A stretch of DNA of 63,882 nt, filler included, from Polymyxa betae A26-41 (Eukaryota; Protista; Endomyxa: Phytomyxea), in assembly GCA_003693705.1 (NCBI GenBank). It is 4 parts of 4 records of this genome, joined end to end, with 100 filler letters (N's around TTAATTAATTAA, not from the genome) between each part and the next. Parts side by side here need not be neighbours in the genome. Positions count along the whole stretch, not along the records: positions 23,495 to 43,570 come from RBZT01000466.1; 3 more parts are not named here. One strand, given 5' to 3'. The notes beneath the pieces are model-generated. The model was not told the DNA's origin and did not search any database. It worked only from the letters and a program-made list of their open reading frames with translations. Made by a program: the position numbers and the translations under genes. Positions within the stretch are counted from its first letter, which is position 1. Each line of letters starts with the position of its first letter. This document shows, piece after piece, positions 23,600-43,570 of the stretch.

Positions 23600-24723
23600 T
23601 TGCAATATATTGGGATGGTGATGAATCTTTACCAGCTTGCGCTTCATCTTGACGCCATAATTTCTCTTCGAGAGCAAGAAGCGCTGAAAACTATTGTAAA
23701 GTTAATAGAGAACAATAAGAAATGGAGCGACTTCGTGCAAACCAAGATACAAACCCAGCGTAATCACCAGAGCGATTTCGTTTCGTACCGAGATAGTGAG
23801 CTTTCACCAGTATTTTCAATTCACCGGTTTTCAAACGACACTGATCAAGTTTGTGAAGTGATTATAAATTCTGATGACAATCTGGACAGCTCCTGCTCTT
23901 GTACTTGCACGTTCTTTTGTTCGAATAGACTCCCATGCCGCCATATTTCCCATGTTTTGTCTCAACATTTCAACAGAAGCCCTTTCGATGTCGGCTTCCT
24001 TCCTGGTCGATGGAGACTTGATCGCCACCCTCTTCACCAGATGGCATGCCGTCGCCTAGGTCTCAGTGCTGGTATAGAAAGACATCTTTCCGAACTCAAC
24101 GAGACTGCAAGCGTTCCAATAAGTTTGCAAGTGGCTGCAAACCAGCAAATTGATTTTCCTCACGATCAAGCTGCGAGTAGCCGCTTAATGCAGGGTTTCA
24201 AGCAGGTGGTGGCACAAGCGCATGAATCCCCCAATCTGTACAAGCGAACCAGATTGACGATCGCCAGTTTAATCAACACTGCAGGCTCCCAAGCCACTGA
24301 CATTTTTGATACAGAAACGGCGCCGGCAATAGGAGTGCTAGCTCCAGAGCGCCAACGGGGGCGTGTCCGAAACCAAGATCTGAAAAAAAAAATCGCTCGG
24401 TTTTAGCTCAAACAGGTCAGCGACCTAAACAGCGAGCCAAGGGAGAATGCGCGGTTTCCGTTCTCACAATGTAGTTCCTGTGGAATCCCACCGAGCAGGG
24501 TCATCACGTTGCCCATATACGGTAATATCCTCACAGCCGCTTGCCAGCCAGCATTCGCAGATGCCAACAGCGGCTCCGGTAAACGTCGCCGTTGCACAGG
24601 TTGTGCACGATCAACGAGCTTACAACATGCAGCGTGGTGGCAGGATTTGATGTTCTGATTGCGAATCGAGAGGGATTCAAATCACAGAATCACATCTCAG
24701 CGGTTGCCCTCTCCAATCGAATC
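23600..24723 (+). mobile_element. SWIM zinc-finger MULE-type transposase-like gene, 3' part (last codons resume at 32511-32569 after the CMC insertion)
   Basis: CSCTCTFFCSNRLPCRHI SWIM finger and RWRLDRHP. C-terminal knuckles CSSCG..HRAGSSRCP and CSDCESRGIQITESHLSGCP. Confidence 0.7.
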
Positions 24724-27700
24724 CACAGCCCAAGTAAAACATAAAAGGTCCATCTCGGAGAATTTTTTACGCGTTCTCTTTAAGATTCGTTATGTGGTGC
24801 ATTATGACCCATAATGGGCAACGTTGATTCAAGCTCCTTTCTGGTTCATAATGGGTAAACTTATAAATACATTATGGTCTTCCACTATGGATCATTACGG
24901 TCGCCCTTATGGTCCTTTATGGAGGCCTTGTGTTTTCAAGGTGGGTCTCCATTATGGATTATCATTATGGTCAGCAATGGTGAGTCATAATGTAAAGAGC
25001 TGAAACTCCATTTTGGAAAGTTCTGTTGTCCATTATGGCCCATGTCGTTGACCGCAATGGATCATAATGTCTGTTATCATGATCAGTTTATCAATAAGAC
25101 GTTGTTTAATACTAGCTATATTAAATATGTTTACAAATCATATGATGAGAATTCAGATGTGGGATTATATGTTTTGTGCTTGCACTGAGTTAAATGTGGA
25201 ACGATGTCATTGTGCGCAGTTTGCTCATAACGGTTCTTTGACTCGGTTATCATGAAGTCATGCTGGGCGTGTGTAGACTCGGGTGCAGAGACGCAGGCTT
25301 GCCGTCCATATCTGTTACGAAGTCATCATCAGCGCAAAGTCCACAAGACTAAAGCTGTTGCCTGTATTCGCAAGTTTATGACCGCATCTTCGTATGTAGA
25401 CCTGTGCCAGATCTGCCAACAATATGAATGACATTTACACATAATCATAGATCCGATGCCGATTTGATAATCTCACATCTCGACCATATGAATGTGCAAT
25501 TCAACCAACAAAGACAGAGCATGACCGGTATCGCGTCGTGTTCTGATTTAGAACATATTTGCCGGCAAAACTCTCAATTGGAACATTTCGTTGCCCTCAT
25601 GAATGACAGCGTGGTCGCCATGATTGAGGTACTCTCATTTTCTTTTTTAAGTGATCACCGATCAGATTATGAAAACAGGCTTGTGAATCCTCTGGATCAG
25701 AGAGATGGGACCTCCAAAAACTGTCCAATGATGTTTGCGCAGACTGTGATGAATTGGTGGCTGACAATGATCTAGCATACAGCCCACCTTCCGCTGACAA
25801 CTCTATGCACATGGTTGACATTGGAGATAATTTACCAGACTCTTGTAGGATAGACATTGCGATTCTCTGCAAAACAACCAAACAGCTGAATTGTCGCAGA
25901 CGAAATGTGTGCTCAACGGTGTATCATTCAATATCCAGAATTTCGGGCACCTAACTCCCCAGCTCATCGAGATTTTCTCTATTGGCCATGGCCAAACAAG
26001 CAATGGATGTCAGCTATCAGCTGGAGTGCTTCCCACCTGGGCGAATACTCAGATAATAAGCATCGTGAGTGGATGAAGTATTGTTTTCTTGATCCCCATC
26101 TACCGCACAATTTCCCTACTACATCTGAGGTCGACAATTGGTACAGCGAGAAGTTAAAAGAGATTGTGGGAACAAAAAACAGTTTGCTTGCCTTCACTCG
26201 GTTTGGTAGAATTCGAGAGTCCGGGTCACAAGCCTTTCCTAATGCTAAGCATAAGAGAATACTTACGTCGACTGTGTACCAATCCGAAACTGGCCGCTGA
26301 AATTGATTTATACCCAAGATTACCAGCTGTATCCGGAGACTTCGAGCTGAACGAATCTGCTTTCTGGAGAGCACAGTATCCTGCTCCTTGTGCAGTTTTG
26401 CCCTCCAATAGTGTTACAGAACAAGACTTGGTTTTCTGGTGCGGTGATTTCCACTTCGTGGAAGGTGAGTCTCTCCTGTGTACTGACAAACTTTGTCAAA
26501 TACTGCTGTTAATATTGCCTTATTGGACCCCACCCGACGTCTCCATGGATGCAAGTCGTTGTCGTGTTCCAGTTTTCAAAGTGGCGTCGTACGATTATCG
26601 GTTTAACAGCTCTTCTGTGGATTATGATCTATTGAAATCGCTTGGCTCATTTTTATTGCAACATGAGACAGGTTGCTAGTGGATTTCTAAGCAACATTTC
26701 GGTTCGAATGCTTCCCATCCAGGAACGCGAACAAGGCACCAAGATTGCTGGTAATCGTTGGAAAATCTAGCTATGGAGTATGCCAATGGCTGTGAGCGGC
26801 CTATTCCAGTGTTCTTTATTGGGATTGGTGCAGGTGGAGATGATTTGAATGTAAGTCGAACTAAGGCAAACTTCGGTAATAATATGTAAGTCTGACGTTG
26901 GGTTCAACACACCGAAGCTCTACCTGATCGCTTAAGCAGATATATCACTTGTACATCACATCCGAAAAGGTTGAGAGATCAAGGTACCTGGAACCTTTTT
27001 GCCTTGTGTGAACGGAACCCATTACCTTATCTGTGGCTGCAGTTATTGAAGCAAATTAATCAGTGCCGGTCGGGAACAAACTTTGCAAAATTCATTTGCC
27101 TACATTTGGACTCTGTAACCTTAGGATTGATCCATTAATATCTCCACATCATGGCTTGCGCAGAAGAATCGTGGTCGTTCCATTTCTCTCTACAGGAATT
27201 GGTGACAATCCAGCTTCTTTAACTATGTGCGGAATGACATCAGGGCGACGCTGCCGCTTTGCTTGGGATTATGGGCTCGCTGAACTTCCAGCTGCCGTGC
27301 CGAACTGCGTTCCAGAGCCTTCAGGCAGGCGAACTTTGGGCCAAGCTGTAGCCATATCAAAATGGGCAGCAACAGCTTCAACCTCGGAAATCAAGACAAT
27401 GCAGAAATCAACTGGAATCGCTCTTCTTTCGCCCTACTGTACATCTTTAATTGAGGAACATGCGAGAATGGAAGTTGATGCATATCAGTTGTTCGGTCCG
27501 GAGCTCTTGCACACTTGGAGTTTGGAACTATGCAAATACATTTTGAGGCTTTTGCTGAAACAACTGCTATTGATGGATCATGAACTTATCGATATTGTGG
27601 AGGAAGCGTTGAACGAGACCAACTGGGTTGAACTTCCCGCCAGGCTCAATGGTCAGTATATTCTGAAACATATTAACTCAATGGTTGGCAAACAGCTCAG

Positions 27701-30700
27701 AGCCACCATGATGGCGTTGCCTTTGGCTCTGCGGTCCTTGAATTATAACAATGGCTCTTCTGGCAAAGTGCTGATCATTTGTGATACCGTTGCAGAGGTT
27801 GGGTGACACGTATGCACGTTCGATACCTGTAATCTTGAACCAGATGATGAGACTGGCATATCAACGCCCATTTAACCAACCAGAACAGTTCCGAGCGCTG
27901 GGGCAAACTTTACAAGACCACTGTCGGGCAATGGGATTCGATTTTTGGGCCATGTCAAAGGCCACACGGTTCTGAACCATCTGTGCGATCTGAGCGAATT
28001 GCTTGGAAGTCCCTCACATTGGAGCAGGTCAGAAAACCATAACATCACTGCACCTGTGACATTGATTGATTTAGTGAGTTTTTGGAATCGACCCATGTCA
28101 CAGATCGTGATTTTATATCGAAAAGCAATTGTCTGAACATTTCCAGAGACATTGCCATACACCACCAATTACGAGCTGTCAATGCCCACATCAGAGACGG
28201 TGGATGGTGGCCTTCAGATTACAAAGATCCGTCCTCTGAATTTGTGGTGGCTGGAAAAGAAGCATTTAGCTACGCAACGTTTGCAGAAGAGATGTCAGAT
28301 GCAGTAATCATCCTCTATCAGACACTAGACGAGGGTCTCGATCCTGTCCAGTTGGATGATTGTGTACCACAAGAAACCATAACCAAAATATGTGACGCTG
28401 TTAGAGGATGGAAGCTCTATAAGTGTTATAGATGCAGAAAAACCAAGATGCGAACAGGCGAATTCTTATCTTGTCTCGACAAAGTCATGAATATGGGCCA
28501 CAATAATTCTTGTGCGAGGCTTCAGCCCGACAAGGACAAATTATGTGTAGTCGGAACACGCATCTATGACATTCGGTCATTGAACCAGTTCTATTTCACT
28601 GGTACTTCGTCAAGGTTGCTCAACATTTACCCACATAAGGATTTCAAGTTTAAGCTTATGATGAGGCAGTTTTGCGGGCATGAGGGCTCTTCGTGTCATG
28701 AGAATGACATTCTCAATCATGACCAATCCAACAGCATCTATATTGGGCATTCTCGCTTCATTTTCAAAATTAATTGATGGTGGTCATCAGGTAACTGATA
28801 TAAATTGAAGAGTTCTGGTTGGCACGTTCTGCGCAAATCACCTCAATATCTGACGGAAGGTTAGCTCACTGTCTGTGCTACTCATCTGCAGTTGTGGCCT
28901 TACCGATTTTTGTAATTTCGAATGACTGCTTGAATTTGGAAACAATGGGTGGCAGTTCTCGTAAGGGGTTTTCGCGTCCTAGTATTGTAGGCACATATTT
29001 TTACTGCCAAAGGTACACAGTAATTATTGGGCTTTCTGATACTGTTGTGAATATCCGCGACCACATCTTTGCTAAGAATTATCTTGAAATGGCGAGAGAG
29101 GTGATCAGCAACAACTCTAATTGATTCTCTGAGAGATTCATTTAGACTTGACCACAGCTGTTATAGTTTGTTGAGGGACGCTTCAACATTCCGTTGTTTG
29201 GGTATCTAATCAGGATATTAGCTTTTTTATCGCAGCGGATTTTCGCAGTGGTAACTTTGATTGTTGTTTGATGATGCAATGTTGAGTCTCCAAACCGGAT
29301 CGCTTTTGATTTGGGTCCTGAGAGCTCCTTTTTTAACGACGATATCGCTGGATTCCAGAAGATTTTAATCATTTGAGGTTTGAAATTTCCCTTGCCAAAT
29401 TGTGATTCTCTTTCGGTCTCACGCTTCAAACCTTATCTGACTAAACTGTCTTCTTCGTAAAATCCGTCCCTATTAAGAGTCTGTGATCGTTCTCTATTTT
29501 TCCGAGCCTCAACGTCCAGAGAAGGTACGCTGTCCTCTGGTGAGACATCCAGGTCATCGCTTGTGTAAATCGACATTGCTTCATCTGGTGACAAGGTCAC
29601 CTCATCGTCCATCATGATGCTCATGGAAATAGGGATGGATGTATAAATATTAACTGAGAAGCGATGTGTCCTGGAAAACTGCGTGGGCAATTGAGACATT
29701 GTCTGTTCGGAATCTATCCATCCATCGTCATGGTTGCTGCAGTATCTTTGGAATCCCCCCAATCGGAGGCCGCCACGACCGTTGATGGTACACCTAGAAT
29801 CTTAGATACGGCTTCCGCCCGTCGGCTGGCTTTCAGTGATGATATCCCTCATGATCGAGAACAATCATACCGCGAACAAGTTTGCCACATCTGAAGTTTG
29901 AGAATGCCGATTGAACTTGAAACTGGATCTGTCGAATCTGTTGAAGAATTGGTTGAAAAAGCGCTTTATGCTGGTCAAGTCAATGAGAACTATGAGATCA
30001 TTGACCCCAATGGTTGGTAGCAGAATATATCATCATTATTCCCAGATGCCATCCATTTGGTGAACGCCGATTTCCAAGACCAAATGGTTGCTGCTTTTAA
30101 ACAGCTGGCCATCAAGATCGACCGAATGGGTCAGGAGATTTCTGAGATACGGGAATTGCTCAAGCCAATCACCGCTAGTCTGTGGGTGCCCCCTCCTAGC
30201 ATGATTCCTGACGTTGCCATCGCGTATTTCGAATCTAAAATGATGGAGACTTCGGACAGCGCATACTTTCAAACTTTACTCCAGCGAAAACACCACGATC
30301 AGATTACCGTAAACTTTTGATTGAAATGGATATGCGAGTCTTATGGATAGTGGTCTCTAACAGGACAATATTCAATTGTCTAAGGCAACGAAAGTTGAGA
30401 TTTCGGAAATCAGCGCCAATCCCAGCGAGACGAAGCGTCAAGCTAAGGACTTCTGCAAAAAATACCTGACCCGTCTGAATGAATCGGATGCGTAAAATTT
30501 GCACGCCTTGATGGCGGAAGCGAAAGAAAAACTGTTCGGTCGCTTGATTAAAACGCGGCCAGGATTGGCGCTCTCAGAATACGGATATAGCCGGGCAGAC
30601 TGTGACAGCCTCGTTACTGCTCATGCCCTATTTCTGGTAAAATATAATGGTCAAACCACAATATATAAGCCAGTCTAACCTGTTTAACTTCAGGTTGCAC

Positions 30701-32508
30701 TGACAGCAAACAATGACTTCCAAACACCTGGACGTCCTGGCAAAGTAGCCAAGACCGTTGCAAACGCTGATACTGCAGAAGTATCGTTTTGGTCCCAGTA
30801 TTCCACTTTTTGCAAGAAAGACAATCATCTCTCCAATCGCGTCTCGAACAAAGGCACCGTTGCCGCAAAAATTCTCGCAATCGCAATGCGAGAGTTTACG
30901 AAATGCATGCTTTTACAGAACTGAGGGTGAATAAACAAAACAAACGCTGTATGTCGTAAACCGACTTAAATTATAGGGGTGCGCAGCCCGCGCAGTCTGC
31001 CGGAGTGCCGGCTGCCGTCAGGATATGCCGTTCGGGTGGTACGCTCGGTTTCCCCGACATCACACCATTGTTGATGCTTATGTTGTTGTCGAGCTAGCCG
31101 AGTTGCCGCCGTGGATGCATCTTTACCATCGCTCGTGCATTAAAGCATCAGGGACCACTCGAACATGTTCTCCCGCGCCCCTGTCACGCCGAGGCCTGTC
31201 TAGCGTTGATGACAGTCAACAGTGAGTTCGGTTTCTAACTTATTGTACACTTGTATAACCTTGATAACGCTAAAAAAGTAATAGCTAGGTGCAGCATGAG
31301 TGGTTGGCTGGCTGACTTGTGAATGAGGTGATCTGCGGCGAACGGAAATATTCGACCTTCTAATGTCTTGGTACAAGAATTACACCAATATACAGGTGCT
31401 CTGATAATTTTTACCGAAACCATACTCTTAGGTCTAAATTGATCCTGACATTGAAGGGATGATCTAAGCAGAGGAATTGTTTTGGAATTTTACACCAGCT
31501 CGCGTCTGGTGATGTTGTTTAGTGATGTGTCGCTTCTTCTTTGATTGATTGGGGCTCCAGGTTACATTTGATTTCTTGGATTGGATTCTGGAGTACTGCT
31601 TAGTTTTTGAGAAGGTAGTATTGCACTCTGTTGGCGCTTTGATACAGTTTCGCCTTTAACATTTAGTTCCCTAATTTAATCTCTGTTTTTGGAGTTTTTT
31701 TCAAACAATTACACAATAATCTCAAATGGTTACTAATATCGGTGATTCTTTTATAGGTTATAGGATATCATTGTTACAATGTGGACTTGCTGAATTCGTG
31801 GGGGCTCTCGTCAGATTTCCGTTTTCGATGGACCAATGTGAGGGTATTTTGCTATGCTGACACTGATCTCACAGACGGCGATTATATGGTCTCATGTTAG
31901 CACCGCAATTCTTGATAGCTGCAGGTCAGTGCGCCGATCCACTGCGGCCAATAACAATTATAAGCTGAATGAAATGGTCGGAGTGATACCCAGCCCCATA
32001 GCAAATTAGCAGACGTCTAGTTGGTGACGCGAGATCGCGATTTCAAGGATCGTTCGTCCTTTCCTTATTCCTGAACCTCTTTTGGTAGCTGATGGTGATC
32101 CTTTTGTATATAGTTTGTTACTCATTATAAAGCGTAATTTATCTCTCAAAAAATTCGTCCAATCCGAGTAGAATTAATGGACCATATCAACATCTCATAA
32201 AGTATTGATTAGTAATTACTTCATGGTCCATCTTGGATTGAATAAGAATTGCTACCTGGGATTTCTGAATAAACCATTGTGGTCAATAACAATTAAACAT
32301 GATGAGATTCCGGAATGGATGACTCCGGTTGTACATTGTGGTCCACAATAAAATTCACTTATGCATTTTACTGAATTTACATTATGACCCATGAAGGATC
32401 TCCATAATGGACCATAATTGCGATACGCATTATGGGCCATAATGGATCTCCGATCCTGAATGCTACAACGTTTGCCATTATGATTCATAATGGACGCACT
32501 TTGCTGTG
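24724..32508 (+). mobile_element. CMC/EnSpm(CACTA)-like DNA transposon, 7.8 kb, CACAG ends, 2-bp TC target duplication
   Basis: Left end TC|CACAGC, right end GCTGTG|TC. Subterminal arrays of CCATAATG/CATTATGG motifs at 24800-25070 and 32170-32495. Removing the element restores the host frame LQSN-PYNPGFDELQIAEAQLLNF-stop. Confidence 0.8.
25400..28777 (+). pseudogene. CMC/EnSpm (Plavaka-like) transposase, disrupted
   Basis: Motifs NPKLAAEIDLYP..FELNESAFW, GGDDLNVSRTK, GIGDNPASLTMCG..RRCR, PELLHTWSLELCKY, SMVGKQLR, and KSNCLNISRDIA...IRDGGWW. These parallel fungal CMC-type transposases (ADNP..C..CR; EILH..LLG.VKY; SN...SRDI; SGGWW). Confidence 0.65.
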
Positions 32509-32673: not shown

Positions 32674-33640
32674 TCATAAAACCATCTTTGGCGGCGAAGG
32701 CAAGGCATCGGATCTGCAATAACAACGCCGATCACAGAGGACTGAGACGCTGGGTGAACAGCACAGTGATAAGTTATCTCGAGTATCAAACCAGGAGGAA
32801 GCGCAGCCTGATTTCAGCCGGAGGAAGAGCAGCCCAGTTTCAGCCGGCGGAAGAAACGAGATTCCGCTTTGCGAAGACAAATCAACACCATCACCTCTAC
32901 TACAAGAATCCAAAATGCTGAAATACTGCATGTAGTGGCACAGAGCATTTGAAACCCCCCTTTTCCGACACAAAACTGTATTTTGATGATAGCTGGACCC
33001 AACAGAGCAAGGGCAGCAATGAAGACGCTGGCCAAAAATAAAACAAGCTTATTGGCAATATATCCATATTGATTGGACAGGGGTCGTGAGAATATTGGTA
33101 ATAAATGTTTGTAGGTAAGCAAGAAACCCAGTTCTGCTTACGATATTGATCTCAGCATCGACAGCGGCGTATACCCCGTTCTTTGATACAAGTTTTACAG
33201 AAAAATAAGCCACGAATAACCCGATGACAAATGCCAACGGAATAATCCTATGTGTAAGCCAACCAGTGTTCACCAACCCATCTAGTAGACAGCTCTCGGT
33301 CACCGCAGGTTCCGAACCCGAAATCAGAACAGAGAATGTGAACGCGACAAAGATTGAATCGCTCTGTGCCGCCACGAGAAACATCACCCTGCAAATTGAA
33401 CATCTTTGATTCTGGACAACCGGAATAATACAACTTTGTGTCGTGGAATCGAAATCCTCGGCGTTCTCAGACAATGCTACTAATACCCTACGTTCGCCTC
33501 CCAGAAGTGTCACAACACGCCAATCCAATCAGAATCGCGACAAGTCAATCCGACGAAAAAATTCTCTCGGCTTCCTCTTCCGTGACAATATGTTGGCTAG
33601 CATTAAACGGGTGTTCCTACGCTTTTTGTGATCAATTGCG
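32674..33640 (-). CDS. Hypothetical membrane protein, fragmented
   Basis: Hydrophobic segments (IIPLAFVIGLFVAYFSVKLV; LVLFLASVFIAALALLGPAII) in adjacent frames. No family recognised. Confidence 0.3.
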
Positions 33641-34164
33641 ATGACGCCTTTCGACAGGCACTAGATCATTTTTATATACGCCTGTGGATAAATGGGTTGA
33701 TGGTCGAAGAAGTCATTGCGATTCATCACAGGACCGGCGGAACAATGCCCGTTTAATACCATCACCTAATTTTCTATTACACTGAAACATATACATTAAA
33801 CCTGTCCGCAAAGTTTTGTGAGTTTTTCACGCTATTTTTAGAAGATACGCTCAAAAAATCAGCCTGTCTGTAAAGTTTCCGATAAACAAAGGTACGTTCA
33901 GGAATTGCAATCTTACGTTCGGATAGGCTACGCGCTTGCTAAGCGATAGACCATTGCTGCCTCCGGTAATGGCGAGCCGAGATGATTGGGCAAGTTCTAC
34001 TGAAAGCGAGGACGTGGCTCAATGCTATTTAGATGATGATTGCATGCAGGTGCTGCGAAATGTTTATATATCGGTCAGTGAACCAGTTCATTAACACACA
34101 GCATCAGGTTCTGTATATTTTGCTTCAAAGATCACGGTTAGCAGCATTAGCAGTAGCAAACATA

Positions 34165-35336
34165 ATGGATATTCTTGAGGATGATGATGATAAGACGAGC
34201 GAATGGATGGATGGGGATTTTTCTGTAATTCCAGACGCTCCTGTTTATGATTACTTGTCGTTATCCGTTGGCCACGAAAGTATTTTCACCAGTGAAACTG
34301 GGTTCTTGTTTTCGGAATGGAACGAGCTTGTTCAAAGAGTTAGCCCAGTTATCAATTCTAGAGGAAGAGACGGCAGCATCAAAGTCAAACCTGGAAGATT
34401 TCCGAAGTTAAATGCTGAACAGCGCCTGCTAAACTGTATAACTTATTTGAAGAAGGTACTGCGATTGAGGTGAAATTTAATGAATTTGTGCCCTTATATT
34501 GCCTCTAGGACGATAAAATTCGAGGGTGCTCTTCTCGATGAAATTATAATCGTTCATCCATTTGCAGCGACTGTATTTTCATTTGCGAGTGTATCATTTA
34601 TGCTCTTGGCCATGAGCTGGTTTGGCCAAATAAAGAACGACGTATGGACCTAGCCAAGCACTAACCTGAATTTCATGGATGCATCGGCTTTATCGATGGC
34701 ACTCTGACAGAGATATCACGCCCTGTTGGGCATTTAAATCCAGATGCTCGTCGTTCTTTCAATGGTTAAGAAGATGTACTGTTTTAATAATTCTGTCGTA
34801 GTAGACCATGACGGGTTGTTTCATCTATGTTGACCCTGGTTATCCTGGATCGTTTCACGATATAAGCATTCTAAAGGCTTCTGATTTATATAAGAACTGG
34901 AGGAATTTCTTTACAGGTGAACTGGACTATTTTGAATACGTGCTTGGAGATCGTAAGGTTAATGAAATTGTCGCAAACTGTTACTAATTGTTTCGCAAAT
35001 GCAGCTGGATACCTAGGAGCAGACATGTTCATCATGAGAAGGGTCGATAATCTTGAGGCTGTTGATGTAGATGGGCCATCGATGAATGCATATAATCGAA
35101 GGCATGCCGGAAAGCGAATTCAGGTAGAATGGGGCATCGGAGGGGTTAAAACGAAATGGAGAGTTCTACAAAATCGCCTTATAATGAGAAGAGTCAAGTT
35201 TTCCATTGTTTTCAAATCCTGCTGTATTTTGACAAATTTTATCCACCGGCGTCGAAGAAATATGGCGATTGTCGAAGTCGGAGACGTTAATGCTGGCGCC
35301 TGGGCAGGAGACGTTTCTGATGATGAAAATGTTTAG
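34165..35336 (+). pseudogene. Harbinger DDE (DDE_Tnp_4/HARBI1-like) transposase
   Basis: GCIGFIDGT, PGYPGSFHD, YVLGD|.GY, and NAYNRRHAGKRIQVEWGIGGVKTKWRVL. In-frame stops are present. Confidence 0.85.
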
Positions 35337-35399
35337 GTTTTTATTTGATTACATTTTTACTTTAACGATAGAGTTAAAGCCAATATTTCTGAATTGGAC

Positions 35400-36197
35400 T
35401 GACTTTCAGTGATAACATGATGTTGTTTTTTAAAGGAAAGTATATCATGCTGGTTCTTTAGAAGCTCTTGATTCTGCTTCTGAATGCTTCAGTTTTTGTG
35501 TTTCTTGGGCATTGATGTCGTTAGTTTTTAGCGCTTGATAACGGTCCGATTGCTGATGGAAGAAACTCGCTGCTTGTTGAGTCCCAATATCAATGGATTT
35601 GCAAATCGATTGAATTGCAACAATAGAGCGCCGACGGTGATGGCTTTTTGAAACAGCAACAACGTCGTCAGAATCATCAGCAACCGTAGAGTCCTCGCCA
35701 ACATCAACTTCCGACTTTTGACTAGCGACGATCTTGGGTGATTAAAGCTTATTCGAGTTAGCACCCTGAATAATATCCAGGCGACGTTTCTGCAAGATTT
35801 TCGACGCCATCGTATCAGAATCCATGAGTGCAAGCATAATGTCACAATTCTGTAATTCTGGTTTAGCATTCTCCCCATCAGCGTTTGCTGTCCCAGTGTT
35901 TAAACCATCAAGGAATCCACGAAGAGTATCCTTGAGATTTCTTTCATGACGAGCTTGAAGGTTGCATCCTAGTTTATCTTCGACGTCAGCTTTGATTTTA
36001 TCCCAGACAGTCTTGGGAAATTTCTGAGTTGATTTTTGTTTTCTTCCTTTACAGTAGTCGCTGAAATGAAGGTGATGGGACTTCGCTAGTAACTCGAGAG
36101 TTTCTGGGGACACGGGACTAGCCCGTTTGGCTTTCACGTCTTCTGCAACTACCTCAGCGTCATTTTCGGTGCTATCGACGAGTACTGGAACGTCCAT
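35400..36197 (-). CDS. Harbinger accessory (Myb/SANT-like) protein
   Basis: ORF 35742..36197 with WDKIKADVEDKLG helix motif, convergent with the transposase inside the TIRs. The 3' end is approximate. Confidence 0.6.
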
Positions 36198-36918
36198 CGA
36201 TGGTCCTAACTTTCAACTTGGACGTTTGCTCTATTTTCGGGCCTTCGGGAGATTTTCCAACCACACGTACGGACATTAAGAACTGCGGCGCCCAGCCTCC
36301 GCAAAAAATCGGACCAACGTAGTTTCAACCGGTTGAACGAAAAATTACCCCATTTTACGGACAGGTTTATTGTACGACTGTGATTCATTTCAACCAAGAG
36401 GGTGCCTCAAGTAGAATTTGCAATAATATTTATGAAGATCACATGAATATAAGTGCGAGTGGCTCGATAATTTTCTCTTAGACAATTTTAATGACCATCT
36501 AAGTGGTCTATAATCATAATGCAATGATATCGTTGTAACATGAATCACAGACAGGTTGGGGCTCTGATCGCATCGGTACCGGCGGCCGCCCGAGTTTCTA
36601 TAGAGGCCATCATCTGCTCTGTCCTTTTACTGACAGAGGGAATGCAGATCAATAACAGGTTTTTTCGCATGCCCCTTTAAGGCGATTCACAATTAGGCAA
36701 AGTCAATTCGCATTGGCGAATCTTGACAACTATTGTCATGAAGACGGTTTCCTGACTGTTTTGGATTGGATTGGATTGGATTGCACTATTTGTTAGCACC
36801 TGACTGGTTTAATTGCTTCAAGCGAAAACGAGTCGTTATTGCTCGTGGTACATTTCGCTCTGCCTTGAATATCGCTATATTTTCATTTTCTCTCTAACGA
36901 ATATGGATACAATCCGCC

Positions 36919-38453
36919 TTGTTGGCGGAACAGTGGTGCACTGAATCGCAGTTACCTCAAATGACAGACGATTTGACGCGTTGGGTGTACCCGGTTGCAC
37001 ATCTAATGTACACGGCCAATTTTTACATGGCTCGGCCATTGTCCGAGGACACACGGCTGTATCTACAGCGTCAATTTGCCGGCAGAATTCGAACCGCCGG
37101 GGCACGGTTGATCGAGGCCTATACCTGGTGCTGTGCCTACGCTACATTCAAACCGTTGGCTGAAGTCGCTGATTTTTTTATTGCATTCAAACGTCCTGTT
37201 CCCGATCGCCTGCAGGCAGCACTTTCGAAGGTCGACACGGCAGTCGTCCGATCGCGGATGCTCAAAGAGGTCGGTAAAACGGTTCGAAATCCTACTCGCG
37301 GTACTGAATTTCATATCACTTATACGACAAACGCCGCAATCCTGACGGCGCGGCCCATTTCCTGTACCTGTTTCGTCGCGTCATTCATCCGTTACATTCC
37401 AACTCAAGTCAGATGCTCTGTTTCCGCTATGGTGCCCTCTTGTTCCACCTGATCTAGAGACTGCTGTGACTGCGCAAACGCTGCGCCCAGTCAGGCAATG
37501 CAGCTACTCAAAAAGCCCAATGTCGATATGTGCAACCTAAAGAACGGCCTGAAAATGGATTGCAACTCTGATTGTCCCGGCTCGAACGAGCGGGATTGCT
37601 GGAATCAGATCGTCAGACAAGCCTGGTATCCTAAACTGGTTCTTGGCCAAACATTGCACTGTGGAACAAGCTTGTTCGCTGATAAGGAGATTCCCGCTTT
37701 CACTTTCATCGTTGAGTACACAGGCAAGGTATTAGAGCGGTTTCGTCAGATCGCGATAAAGCTGCTACTAAAATCGGCAGCACTTCAGTCAGTGGTAAAT
37801 GAATTGTGTTTTATTTCCAGCTCGAATCCCAGCTTCATTCAGCTCAGTCCGAACGGACACCGTGCGGACTCCGCGGGGGTCTAGCCCATTAATATTACGG
37901 TACGTCTTCATACTTTAGTCTTGTTCGCATCTTTGTTACGCATCAGATTTATGCTTGAGTCATCAAGGCTTCTCTGCGTGCGCTGATCTTCAATCTGCGT
38001 ACGCACTTTAGAAGGGATAAGATTTTATAATGTTTTTTTAATAAATCTGATACAGTATACTTGTTCCCATCATCTAGCAAACATGTCGTAATCTGGTGTG
38101 TAGAATGTGGAGGGAGGTGAATGGGAGAACAACCCCAAATATGACGCAAACTACACGGCCTACATTGATCCGGCAACGATGCTCTGCCAACATATGATCG
38201 GAGGCAGTTATCCACTTGCTGCTTATGCGAACAGTATGTGTGACCCCAACTGCGAACTGAAGCCCTGGCGAGTCCCTAATGACGGCAAACGACCCGCTGA
38301 AAGAAAAATACTGGTGTCCAAACGTCCGATGAAAAAAGGAGAGGAAATCGGTGGGACTATCTGAAAGAAAAGATTTGGCGCCAATTCGTAAATGGCCTGT
38401 GCAGTGCCTGCTGTCCCTGCAGTCGATGTCGGGCGTCGCGTCAACAGGCATGA
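36919..38453 (+). CDS. SET-domain lysine methyltransferase (Cys-rich pre-SET/AWS-like + SET + post-SET), intron-containing
   Basis: DCNSDCP...CWNQ pre-SET region, GTSLFADKEIPAFTFIVEYTG, AYANSMCDPNCE and KKGEEI(G)WDY (1-nt frameshift in a G run). Post-SET CSACCPCSRCR. Confidence 0.8.
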
Positions 38454-39287
38454 GGGACAGAGCGATATGTTAGCCCCTGACTCCAACATTGACCAACAAT
38501 AAGGGTCCCAACACCCGGCAACCGGACCGCTGGTCGTGGTGGTAGACCGCAGGCGACCCATGCAACTGCTCGGGTGTCGCCGGTAACACTACCAATAAAC
38601 AAACAGTGAGACCCTGCTACTCTACCACCTTTCGGGGTGGCCGGGCCTGATATTTTTCTCAAAATCAAGAACGAGGTGTTTCGAAACAGTAAATGAGCTG
38701 GGTTTGTTGTCTACCCCACTTGTGAGGTTTTCGCAGCCGGCTAACGCATGCCTCTGCGCTGGTCGCCCATCTGTTGAACGCCGCTGATCAACCGGTTGAA
38801 CACTGTTGCATTTACCGTTGCCAGCAGTTGCAATAATCGTTGTCAGATGTTGTACTTACCGTTGCTATCGTGGTTCGGTGAAAATGGCAACCCTTTTATG
38901 TACCACCTGTTTGTACAAGGGTTCCTAACCGTCACGCGAGCGGGTTTCCGCGTGTTTCCCAACCGCTGTCGACAGTTAACGCAAATGTTGTTGAGATTTT
39001 ATGTGAATATTAAAAAAACAATGGGCGCAACGCATCCCGCCAGAGGAGCGCTTTCACCTCCAGCGATTGACATGCACACTGTGCAAAACTAGCAGTAAGG
39101 GTTCGGAAGTCAGACATACAGACTCCAGGAAGCCAACCACATGACCGCATTTCGTGCTAGGCGGCGAAACGGGCGAATCGAAACCTATCGGGCATAGCAC
39201 ATGCACCGGAGGGCGGGCAATCGGGGCCACGAACCCTGCTTTCTCCTACTTTAAATACGCGACATCGGCGCCGCTGTTGGAATCCAA

Positions 39288-42200
39288 TCAGGCATCAGAC
39301 TTTAAATTGATGACAGAGTCTCCGCTGTCGTTGCTGCTCGAAACCATTGCGTCCGATTCATCTACTGTTCCGAATACTTCTGCAGCGATGTGACTGCGTT
39401 CAGCCGTGGGACGGTCTGCGACCGCTGGCTCCGGTGGCGGTTGATCGATCCCGAGCACCTGACGCCATCCTCTCCCCCGTTGCATAGGGATCTGTCGCCT
39501 GCCCCGCATGGCGACGACGACGCCCTAGGACTACCATAATTCTTGCGGGAACAACCCCTTTGCCCAAATAGCCCCCAATGGTGCACATATTTATTGCGTT
39601 CGTTACGGAATTTCAGCATCTCTATCGTCGGTGCAAAGAGAGGAAAAATGTCGCAAGCCAACGCTGAGATCGTTGGCCTTCGAAAGCCTGAGAATGGGCG
39701 CACGTGTGAGCTGCATGAGGCCTGTGAACTGGTTAGTCGGTGTCGTCACGCTGTTGCGGTTCAAATTCACAGTCATTGAGAGTAGCTGCTCCAATTTTTT
39801 CTGTAAACATTAACCCCAGTTTACACGATTCTCTTAACTAGGGAATGGTTTAGTCGAAGAAGCGGAGGCCGCCCATGCAGTAACCAACGGTAACGAATCT
39901 TGTCGTGTCGCATTTCTCCCCAACAGCTGCATGCCTAATCGCGAGCGATTTGTTGGGAAGTTCGCTCAGGTGGTAGAACTATATTCCATTTCCGAAAATT
40001 CCCACAAACGTCGAGAAGATGCCCGAAATTGTGGAATGGAGTCGTGCGTGCTCCTGGATGCAATTCCTGTATTAGAATAAAAACACAGTCACTGCTGTGA
40101 GGCAGCCTTAATTCCCACATGGCTCCATTTGTTAAAGTCGATACCTGGCTCCAGGCGTACAGCGCCCGGAGTGCGATGTCCTGCCGACGAGGTTTCTCAT
40201 TCGGCGCTGACCGATTGATGAGAAACTCGGTATGATTTTGTTGAAAGTGGAATTTAAACGGTCGGTTTATACCTACATCAAGTACCTGCAGCTTGGAGGT
40301 ATAAGCAGCCACAATGACTTCGGCCTGAAAACAATGTCAAGGTAACGAAATGTACATTTCTGCATATACTTCGGTCCCAAGTTCGGCAAGCTTGTCGATT
40401 ACGGTGGATTCCAGATGAGCCGAAAAGCAGTCAAGCAACAGGTCGGAGGCACGAGCTTGTCGAGCTAGAATCCAAGGTTGCCAAACCCGTTTAATCCACT
40501 CGAGCATGATTTCTACATCCATCCAAGCGTTCGTCTGCACAGTCATGACAATGCCTCCAGGGTATCCGCGACTGATGAAGGCACCGACCACCTCACGATG
40601 GTTTTTTCCCTTGCGTATTCCCTTGAAGACGAGGAAAACCGGAAGCTTCTTGCCCGTTAACGTGACCCCCAGCAGAGCGGTGGCACGCCCGGAGGAGCCG
40701 TTTCCGGTCACAACAATGGTTCGCCGACCACGACGAGACAAAGTTGTTTTAGCCGGAAGATCAAACTGAATGTCTGTTTCGTCGATATTGACCACGAACT
40801 CTGGTGGAATTGCCATCATTGTGATAGGATCATTGACAGCAGCAACGAAGTCGTCAATGATGGTAGCCTCGTGTCGCGTGTTCTGGGAGACATGGGTTGC
40901 ACGCCTCTGTACAAACCCTTCTCTCTCGAAAAACCGATAAATTCGTTTCCTCAGAGCCCAATCATTGCCGACACAAAAAGATGGCTGGAATCTATAGATA
41001 AAATGAATGTATTCTTATAATACTATCCTAAAAATCGTGAAAACAAAAAGCCAATACCGACGAACTTTATGAACCAGCATCGATCCAGTGACAACATGGT
41101 CCGGAGCCGTATTTGATCAATAAATTCTCGAAGATGATCCCAAACATCTTGGCCCTCTACGATGGCTTGAATGGAAGACAGCGGCCGGTGCATTCTGGCC
41201 CGACGGTCGATGTCATCGCTGATGTCCAGCTGCTTCTTCCATCTCTTGATATTTCGCCAGTCGACGCCATTTTTCTTTCCTGTTTGATACAGCGCCCCAG
41301 GCCGTTCAAATGCTTTATTGACAATGGCTATTTTCTCTCCAATTGTAAACCGACAGATGTTGCGGCCCATGGTACTATGATGATATGCAATCCGCACATG
41401 GTTCGAATCGTCGTAGCCCGTGCCGTTTTTTGGGGCCGTTTTCAGACGATTTTATGAAAAGAAAGAATTTATTTCTTGCACAAATAACCCCCTTCATACA
41501 GAAAAAAGGCCGCGCTCTGCACATTAGTAGGGGTTATTTCGGCAAGAATTACGGTATCACAATGACCGCACACTACGGCGATTGAGGGTTGCGCCGACAC
41601 CCTCATCATCCCGCCCTCCCATGCGAAATCAACCACGTCTTGAGCTGTTTCCAGGGCGATAGCTGTGAACTTTGCCAGGGAGTGTTTTGGGCTGATTTTA
41701 TTGCGGTGGTATCTGAGGAAACAGAAACGGGAGACAATGGCTCTCGAATGCTCCCACCCCTGAGGATTCTTCAGTGAATTGTGTGAGCGCGTAATGTGAC
41801 TGCACGGTTCGTGGTGCATGTCTGCCAGACAGTTGGAATGCCTCCAACTTTTCTTTCGGGACTGTCCTGGCGCCGATGCGCTCCTGCCACTTTCGCACGT
41901 CTGTTGGACGGAAGCGGACCTGACTCGTCCGGAGAGCGACCTTGAAGAAACCCTAGATGAGCTCGTATCAGCTGAAATAGATAACTCATTGGCGGGAAAC
42001 CGGCTCGACATGGGTGCGTTGTAGAAGCGTCGAGGGCGTCAACTCGTGATTCGTGACTCGCCACGTCGGCAGAAGCAGCCCGGTATCCCGCATTGGTTCG
42101 GGCAGCAGTGGCAGCACTGTATCAATCCACCAGTTCAGCTTGTCGGCGATGATCTGCGTCAGATCGTGAGGCCGCGACTCCAAATGCCCTAGATAACCAT

Positions 42201-43300
42201 CATTTGGTAGTTCTACAACGATCTAAACGCCAGGCAGTGCCGCTTAAGTGTCCTTGGTGTGCGCTTGAACGACTTCGATTCCCAAGTCCTTGTAGGCGTA
42301 GACAGCGCAAACCGGATATCAGCGACCTTGGCGCGGCACCATTCTTGACTTCTGATCGAGCGGGTCCATAGCTGCACGGCAGCGGTCATGAACGTCAGCA
42401 CCTCTGAGTAGACTGCCTCCGGAAGTGTACACGACTCTGAACACAACTTCGCCCAGGCTTGTATCTTGGCGTCTGTTTCCAATAGATGCTTGGCAGCGAC
42501 GTCCCAAACCTCCGGGCTTTCCAGAACCGTGCTAACACTAGCATGACCTCCACGGGCGCCACGATTCTGCCGCTAGAGAGTACGAGTCCGGAATGTGGTC
42601 TCTTGGCGCAGATATCGAAGTGGATCCAAATGACACTATTTTACGCAAACAAACGGGAATAGCATAATACAGGATGGATGGAGTTTATTATACAGCATCT
42701 TACCAATCATGCATGTCTTTCAAGGGCTGTTGATGCTTTTGATCATTGTTAGCCAATCAGATCGCTGGAAATCAAAGGCACCAATTTTGCGCGCGTCTTG
42801 AAAAGTTTCCCGCTTAATATCTGCATAGTCTAGACTGAGTGCGAACGGCAATATTGTCGGGCATAAGATTGAACCTTTCCGGATTATGGGCGCGATTCTG
42901 CCAGAATCAGATAAACATGTGTCGACTTGTGATAAGCGCGGGCCATTACAGCGTAGTTGTAATGGGCGACATCCATCATGGCGCTGGCAACGAGCCGGAA
43001 GTTATTCTTGAAAAATGCTGCTCGCAATTAGATCTTTACCATGACATGGTAGAGGCACGTACAGTATCCAGTTTCGATCTGCCGAGACAGCCTTGTATCA
43101 CGAAACAACGGAATAAGACTGATCAAGTGCGCATGTAATGTAATACCTGAACGTAACGGCATTTCTATTTACAATAACATTATCATTTTGAAAACTGTCA
43201 ATATTTGGGATCGCGTTCTTTGGCAGGCTTCGAATTGCCAGATCGGTGGCCTGCAGTTCCGCTGTTGATATGTGTTGGTTTTCTCGCTCGGTGAGCGGCT
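39288..43300 (-). CDS. Tyrosine recombinase (Crypton-like) with introns; probable C-terminal extension interrupted by the pogo element
   Basis: Catalytic motifs in order: WTRSIRSQEWCRAKVADI (R), SFKRT (K), RPTDVRKW (H-x-x-R position), SGRHAP (H), TVQSHY (Y). A phase-0 GT-AG intron lies at about 41953-42000. Gene ends are approximate. Confidence 0.65.
39534..41554 (-). mobile_element. Pogo (Tc1/mariner) DNA transposon with TA target duplication
   Basis: TIRs TA|CCATAATTCTTGCGGGAACAACCCC and GGGGTTATTTCGGCAAGAATTACGG|TA. Transposase with HTH N-terminus (41370), NIDET, NAWMD, LLLDCFSAH and LQVLDVGINRPFK (DDE_1). Confidence 0.9.
39648..40080 (+). CDS. Pogo passenger gene, HIRAN-like small protein
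   Basis: Two exons: MSQANAEIVGLRKPENGRTCELHEAC... and SCRVAFLPNSCMPNRERFVGKFAQVVELYSISENSHKRREDARNCG...-stop. It is convergent with the transposase inside the TIRs. Confidence 0.55.
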
Positions 43301-43570
43301 ACGATTCAGAACGATGTGAGCCGAACACAATCAATAACAGAATGAGATGTATTAGAAGTGAAAATTGATCTTTAAATACTCGAGTCTATTAGGGCGCTCT
43401 CATACCTTGGTAAACTCCGCGGCGGAGTTTTCATCCACCGTGGCTGTAGGCCATCACCCACTGGTTTCACAGTATAGTAATTCTGCGCGTCGGGGTTCTC
43501 GAGCGACTTGGGTTGTTGTGGAGGCGCCACACTGCTGGAAGGTGTACAGATACTAGTCGAGTGTTGGCTC

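Follow-up and report, generated by a model that had tools for sequence, protein, structure and literature searches.

Do two decayed genes that point at each other near the end of a piece of Polymyxa betae sequence belong to one mobile element, or did a region crowded with transposons bring them together by chance? The genes lie in P. betae A26-41 (GenBank assembly GCA_003693705.1), within a window of 63,882 nucleotides, the whole stretch of DNA under study, which joins four records by 100-letter fillers. Positions count along that window, and the piece analysed here covers 23495-43570 (~20 kb, record RBZT01000466.1). One gene, on the plus strand (~36900-38453), encodes a SET domain. The other, on the minus strand, carries residues in the order expected of a tyrosine recombinase (YR), and a preliminary description of the locus had proposed that the two make up a Crypton-like element. 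Read from the sequence, the two-gene anatomy would fit such an element: an intron-containing YR-like gene, a SET gene that faces it, and a nested DDE transposon. We put the probability that the locus was once such a Crypton-like DNA element with two genes, since decayed, at about 0.4.

The SET-domain gene

The plus-strand gene is a real SET gene. The Pfam SET profile matched the exon at 38104 with an E value of 8.9e-5 (23.3 bits vs a cut-off of 22.4). With the exon at 37458, phmmer found yeast Set2 (E 3.2e-6), SETD2 (2.6e-4), NSD2 (4.5e-3) and EHMT2 (6e-3); the H3K9 enzymes EHMT1/2 were weaker matches to this exon (~6e-3) than Set2 and SETD2. The SET call of the preliminary description is borne out by a profile match above cut-off, with Set2 and SETD2 as the best relatives. 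Its pre-SET assignment gives way, because the cysteine region N-terminal of the SET domain fits AWS (Set2/NSD/ASH1) best and the best relatives are Set2 and SETD2, which together indicate the AWS-SET-postSET order of the H3K36 class. The post-SET part is read by eye only.

The first coding stretch (36898..37407, plus strand) is an open frame for an N-terminal domain of ~170 amino acids (aa). Of the six frames it scored best in the amino-acid composition test, the nearest upstream ATG (36904) is out of frame with it, and it had no match in Pfam, PHROG, NCBIfam or PDB. A predicted 50-nt GT-AG intron (37408..37457) follows, which removes an in-frame stop at 37450 and is the sole candidate of 40-110 nt within 37395-37470. 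The AWS-type cysteine cluster and the N-terminal half of the SET domain are encoded at 37458..37744, where Set2 was found and where the Pfam SET profile gives E 0.15-0.17, and the C-terminal half at 38104..38348, the stretch of the significant Pfam match, which also resembles ASH1L (E 0.024). On translation, the SET end motif W-D-Y and a cysteine-rich, post-SET-like tail without a Pfam match appear in a shifted frame at 38349..38453, closed by a stop at 38451-38453. The frame shift lies directly ahead of the terminal W-D-Y with its catalytic Tyr.

The SET gene is thus a pseudogene, frameshifted and very divergent, and its middle exons are ill-defined. It shares the AWS-SET-postSET order with the Set2, SETD2, NSD and ASH1L H3K36 methyltransferases, which are its best structural relatives. 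It differs from them by its frameshifts, a changed cofactor motif and an N-terminal part unrelated to theirs, and its similarity to them is weak (best E 3e-6), which argues against a host Set2 orthologue.

The minus-strand gene

The minus-strand gene is probably a multi-intron coding relic. The preliminary description had confined it to ~41700-42480; splice phase and frame tests extend it, from ~43300 to 39288. The GT-AG intron and the single frameshift of that description were recovered (42009-41953 and near 42222), together with several more breaks in both genes.

Upstream exons, broken by stops and frameshifts, were recognised by splice-signal and frame inspection at 42576..43300, with candidate introns at 42703-42636, 42949-42898 and 43062-43018, and had no family match. 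The piece ends ~270 bp past the last of these exons, and the 5' end of the gene may lie beyond the piece edge (43570). A premature stop (42573-42575) stands directly upstream of the exon with the YR-like box I (42223..42572), which holds R 42353, a D-I pair downstream of it, and K 42266. The middle of the YR-like catalytic domain (42010..42222) is an open frame with a predicted strand, helix, short hydrophobic motif and helix, and it came first of six frames in codon-usage and amino-acid tests alike. It is followed by a predicted GT-AG intron (41953..42009, 57 nt, in frame) that contains a branch-like site and is the only candidate of 40-110 nt that both preserves the frame and removes three in-frame stops. 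The box II exon (41758..41952) carries T-x-x-R (41904/41895), H 41820 and Y 41793, and a further GT-AG intron lies at 41757-41713. An intron at the A/B exon junction was considered and dropped, a 1-nt frame change near 42222 being simpler.

Past the catalytic Tyr, a probable C-terminal exon (41601..41712) lies in an open frame (41559-41798) that was first of six. To be joined to the catalytic exon it needs a change of frame, and it has no family match. Beyond it stands a pogo-type transposon of ~2 kb (39534-41554), which separates the catalytic exons from the SET gene. When this element and one TA were removed in silico, a 53-nt intron joined 41601 in phase to an exon at 39524-39288. The transposon therefore apparently sits in the last intron of the minus-strand gene, and 39288..39524 is probably the last exon (78 aa, first of six frames, no family match).

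How strong is the case that these stretches once formed a coding gene? The GT-AG introns at 43062-43018, 42949-42898, 42703-42636, 42009-41953 and 41757-41713 are phase-compatible or nearly so, and the candidate introns measure 45-68 nt, the same sizes as read by eye in the neighbouring transposases. Further evidence comes from a composition-corrected amino-acid test, in which seven minus-strand stretches each ranked first of six frames (controls, 9/12). The stretches had been chosen by motif and splice phase. The test carries moderate weight, having been run second, after a codon-usage test. At least one stop (42573-42575) and about four frame changes interrupt the gene. Both genes are pseudogenes, broken to a similar degree, and so this copy is not currently active.

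Is the minus-strand gene a tyrosine recombinase?

As far as sequence can tell, the minus-strand gene is likely a tyrosine recombinase. R 42353, K 42266, T-x-x-R 41904/41895, H 41820 and Y 41793 follow one another in YR order and at near-canonical spacing, and all five motifs lie on the minus strand just as the preliminary description had them. Against 12 reference YRs with a full box II, the H-to-Y distance is 9 residues (9-10 in the references) and the R-to-H distance 25 (22-23). A MAFFT alignment placed the box I Arg and the D-I pair in register with those of XerD, lambda Int and Cre. Inspection by eye also shows the strand that follows the Lys, the next helix, the short hydrophobic motif and the helix ahead of box II running parallel to the reference alignment. 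Matrices built from prokaryotic YRs ranked box I 6th among 40022 positions and box II 71st among 40088. No other YR-like arrangement in the 2-kb gene region scores better than the proposed site, which was matched by 43 of 2000 shuffles (p ~0.02), a figure that applies to a region picked after the fact and to fixed catalytic residues.

Several results weigh against the recombinase call. The distance from the first Arg to the His is ~131 residues, vs 73-116 in reference YRs, and the first His of the H-x-x-R motif is a Thr. With the residues fixed, 51 of 200 shuffles of the whole 20-kb piece gave a match (p ~0.25). In a separate test with the catalytic residues unfixed, 741 of 2000 shuffles gave one. 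Neither result is significant, and the motif set lies only modestly above chance. The YR exons had no match in Pfam (searched at E 10), PHROG, NCBIfam or PDB; a custom hidden Markov model of 15 prokaryotic YRs, one row of which was off-frame, gave no significant score; and the earlier codon-usage frame test was mixed, one training stretch being off-frame.

Searches for relatives yielded none. The exons had no match to Phage_integrase, DUF3435, DUF3504 or NDC10_II in exon-sized queries of low power; GCR1_C, like NDC10_II, had no Pfam match on the exons, and the pieces of the C-terminal extension were also blank. No true relative of the box I exon was found among 1.84 billion protein representatives; the sole match in that search, an RCC1-repeat bacterial protein, was discarded as a repeat artefact. 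Word searches with YR exons A and C returned nothing, and tblastn against phages and plasmids gave matches only at E 3-9, none of them on integrases. Two viral matches were discarded because they fell on the antisense strand of phage sigma-factor/SSB-like genes. Scans of viral contigs with lambda Int and Cre recovered only copies 99-100% identical, useless for a profile. Single-sequence AlphaFold models reached a pLDDT of 51-52 and had no Foldseek match below E 2; they are too poor to inform. All searches were run exon by exon, which limited their power and is the main reason why the YR call stays at likely.

One alternative is that the minus-strand gene, before its decay, belonged to some other family and that its YR motifs are a chance pattern picked out over three frame pieces. 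The blank unbiased searches, the one in four whole-piece shuffles that equal the strict motif set, and models (pLDDT ~51) that show no YR, though they are uninformative, all fit this explanation. However, only 2% of shuffles match within the gene alone, box I is in the top 6 of 40022 positions, and by eye the segments between the boxes share more collinear features with the references. In addition, exon-sized queries (78-119 aa) are poorly suited to detect a family with only ~6 common residues. A non-recombinase origin is unlikely.

One element or chance neighbours?

If the minus-strand gene is a recombinase, does the SET gene belong to it? The two genes are convergent. The preliminary description had them tail-to-tail about 0.8 kb apart; the orientation holds, and the raw gap, from the SET stop at 38453 to 41700, is ~3.25 kb. 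The stop-to-stop gap falls to ~0.83 kb with the pogo-type element discounted and the inferred last exon counted. The convergent layout, the short gap, the similar decay and the position of the SET gene outside the neighbouring DDE elements support one unit. No reverse transcriptase (RT), RNase H, capsid, polymerase or helicase was seen among the open reading frames (ORFs) scanned in the piece. The claim that the unit lacks RT, capsid and DDE genes survives with a qualification, as a DDE element does lie in the gap, nested there and not part of the unit. Provided that the minus-strand gene is a YR, the locus shows the YR without RT or RNase H that marks a Crypton.

Next to the SET gene lies a complete PIF/Harbinger element (33798-36368; DDE_Tnp_4, E 6e-9). 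The SET gene begins ~530 bp beyond its terminal inverted repeat (TIR), and the same trinucleotide stands outside both TIR cores, at 33798 and 36368. Since the SET gene lies outside these ends, it is not an accessory gene of that Harbinger, and an origin as the HarbingerS-type accessory of this neighbour was excluded.

Other results count against a single element. No relative of either gene was found in scans of metagenome, viral and prokaryotic contigs, so that no co-occurrence was seen; the scans, run with YR, SET and DDE pieces, recovered no YR or SET copy and no second YR+SET pair. No repeat pair or TIR pair brackets the two genes, and no element ends are defined. The SET gene itself reads N-S-M-C-D-P-N where the cofactor motif is N-H-x-C-x-P-N, with Ser for His. 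The piece also holds at least four other transposon relics, and with so many insertions adjacency is cheap and only weak evidence for a unit.

The obvious alternative is that the two are chance neighbours in a transposon graveyard, a one-gene, Crypton-like YR relic next to a SET gene of other origin, and this is nearly as likely as one element. The SET gene could then be an accessory of a lost or upstream HarbingerS, MuDR, Helitron or Plavaka-type element, or a host gene copy turned pseudogene. Transposon debris fills nearly the whole 20-kb piece, those same DDE and Helitron groups are documented to carry SET genes, no repeat pair encloses both genes, and short repeats in the 0.83-kb gap could be the end of another element. 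However, the adjacent Harbinger is closed by TIRs with the same trinucleotide on each side and leaves the SET gene out, no TIR pair flanking the SET gene was found, and the tidy convergent spacing and similar decay fit a single unit.

A third explanation makes both genes passengers of a larger carrier, such as a giant Plavaka, a Helitron or a virus-like element, that extends past the piece edge; the YR would be a resolvase or passenger and not the mobiliser. The piece does stop at 43570 before the gene start is located, a Plavaka-like stretch lies 8-11 kb upstream, and some giant Plavaka elements do carry an accessory SET gene (10.1101/2025.02.11.637652). However, this Plavaka-like stretch is seemingly closed by its own inverted subterminal repeats before the SET gene, and no capsid, polymerase or helicase match was found among the ORFs scanned. 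We consider a larger carrier very improbable.

Two further observations concern the surroundings of the gene pair. Minus-strand frames at 32680-33530 encode hydrophobic, membrane-like stretches without a family match and lie ~0.8 kb head-to-head from the SET gene once the Harbinger is discounted; they could be a third gene of the YR-SET unit, or a host gene.

One 14-nt palindrome occurs both at 36325-36338, inside the right end of the Harbinger, and at 38788-38801, in the gap between the SET and YR-like genes. The latter copy lies ~335 bp downstream of the SET stop, beside a 22-nt tandem repeat. It could be the end of another element, or chance.

Comparison with known mobile elements

Introns occur in the YR genes of Cryptons. 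They are recorded for CryptonA YR genes (PMC13465315). The present locus resembles CryptonA/Glomhopper in having an intron-containing, truncated YR-like copy in a transposon-rich compartment, as described in the same source, whose abstract and Background mention no SET gene. Unlike CryptonA/Glomhopper, it has no DUF3504 match; CryptonA also lacks a C-terminal domain (PMC3212892). CryptonF and CryptonS have a region C-terminal of the YR and, in some families, a second gene (PMC3212892), which encodes a C48 peptidase, a DDE transposase or a helix-turn-helix protein (PMC3212892; PMC13465315). The likeness to CryptonF/CryptonS would lie in a eukaryotic YR gene without RT, a C-terminal region, a second gene and the lack of a TIR pair around the unit. 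The second gene here is a SET gene, unlike theirs, and no sequence similarity to them is shown.

Among elements that carry SET genes, HarbingerS and MuDR of Phytophthora (PMC12730594), Helitrons and the red-algal Plavaka PAG2 (10.1101/2025.02.11.637652) are established, and the capture of SET genes by transposons was repeated (PMC12730594). The locus would share with them a DNA transposon context and an accessory SET gene. Those elements move by DDE or rolling-circle enzymes, whereas the partner here would be a YR. As in Starships, a YR-mobilised element would travel with other genes (PMC11162782; PMC13465315). Starships are giant, are seemingly confined to filamentous Dikarya (same sources) and have a DUF3435 captain; the present locus has two genes only and no DUF3435 match on any exon. 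The traits of DIRS, Ngaro and VIPER were looked for, and the piece holds no RT match and no long repeats.

A possible mechanism and its meaning

How might such an element have worked? The minus-strand gene, with six or more introns of 45-68 nt, would encode a large protein made of a YR catalytic domain and a C-terminal extension of ~130 residues, and the plus-strand gene an accessory histone lysine methyltransferase of the Set2/ASH1 class. By analogy with known Cryptons, recombination between short terminal direct repeats would let the recombinase release a circular form of the unit, and the circle would insert at a matching target of 4-6 bp. This circle/short-target model was set out for Cryptons (PMC3212892) and is supported for the active CryptonF-1_cRei (PMC9977147). 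The SET protein would methylate the chromatin of the element, most likely at H3K36 to judge by its family, and so might sustain expression or blunt host silencing. In later steps, a pogo-type element would have entered the last intron of the recombinase gene and frameshifts would have built up in both genes, leaving a dead copy.

That the SET protein sets or evades silencing, as the preliminary description suggested, may be proposed from its family. CpG is not depleted across the piece 23495-43570 (observed/expected 0.99, GC 46%), falling to 0.73 only in the Plavaka-like stretch. Non-depleted CpG in old transposon relics suggests that the host methylates few cytosines in its repeats and may silence them by histone marks. 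It is doubtful that the locus represents an undescribed lineage of eukaryotic YR DNA transposons, too divergent for its box I exon to find a relative among 1.84 billion protein clusters, that stably carries a Set2-class methyltransferase to mark its own chromatin. By analogy it would work like a Crypton with an accessory chromatin enzyme, although it can be assigned to no named Crypton group.

The pairing would be less new if fish and cnidarian genomes prove to have YR genes next to PR-Set7-like SET genes. It is also less surprising now that transposons with SET genes have been described (PMC12730594; 10.1101/2025.02.11.637652). No report of a Crypton or other YR element with a SET domain was found in the titles, abstract openings and passages searched, a literature that left Repbase Reports and most subscription papers outside; within it, no earlier Crypton-type element with a chromatin writer was found, and the locus, if one unit, would be the first. 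If the linkage is true, YR elements would join the transposon groups that independently captured a histone methyltransferase, which would point to repeated counter-silencing by chromatin writing, and the locus would supply a very divergent family of eukaryotic recombinases. An intact copy would allow the protection of an element by its own SET protein to be tested. One dead copy makes the locus a lead rather than a result.

Other features of the piece

Nearly all of the piece is transposon debris, made up of a SWIM-finger ORF, an EnSpm/Plavaka-like stretch, the PIF/Harbinger and the pogo-type element. Eleven ORFs of the window had no exact-sequence match in the protein collection, and a search for tRNA and Rfam features found none.

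The nested element is a pogo/Tc1-mariner-type DDE transposon (39532..41556 with its TA duplication) whose transposase lies on the minus strand (DDE_1, E 3.4e-10). It has 28-nt TIRs with TA on both sides. The transposase has two introns, and a second short gene lies inside the TIRs on the opposite, plus strand (~39646-40080); elements of oomycetes and diatoms also have small ORFs of this sort. For the DDE exon a single relative was found, 62% identical, in Logan run ERR10755939.

The Harbinger carries a transposase on the plus strand, convergent with a second, probably Myb-like, gene on the minus strand. It is bordered on both sides by ATT, not the usual TWA, and these flanks suggest the Pangu/Harbinger2 group. 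That group adjoins HarbingerS (PMC12730594).

Further upstream, a probable EnSpm/Plavaka-like element (24800-32500) was recognised by eye, with broken transposase-like frames at 25.9-28.8 kb and more ORFs at 29.4-30.9 kb. It has no Pfam match, and an 18-nt repeat family is inverted at its two ends in subterminal position (~24.8-25.1 and 32.3-32.5 kb). Near the edge of the piece, where its start lies, is an ORF of 268 codons with a SWIM zinc finger (23600-24406; SWIM E 0.0012); Mutator-like transposases typically have such a finger in their C-terminal part.

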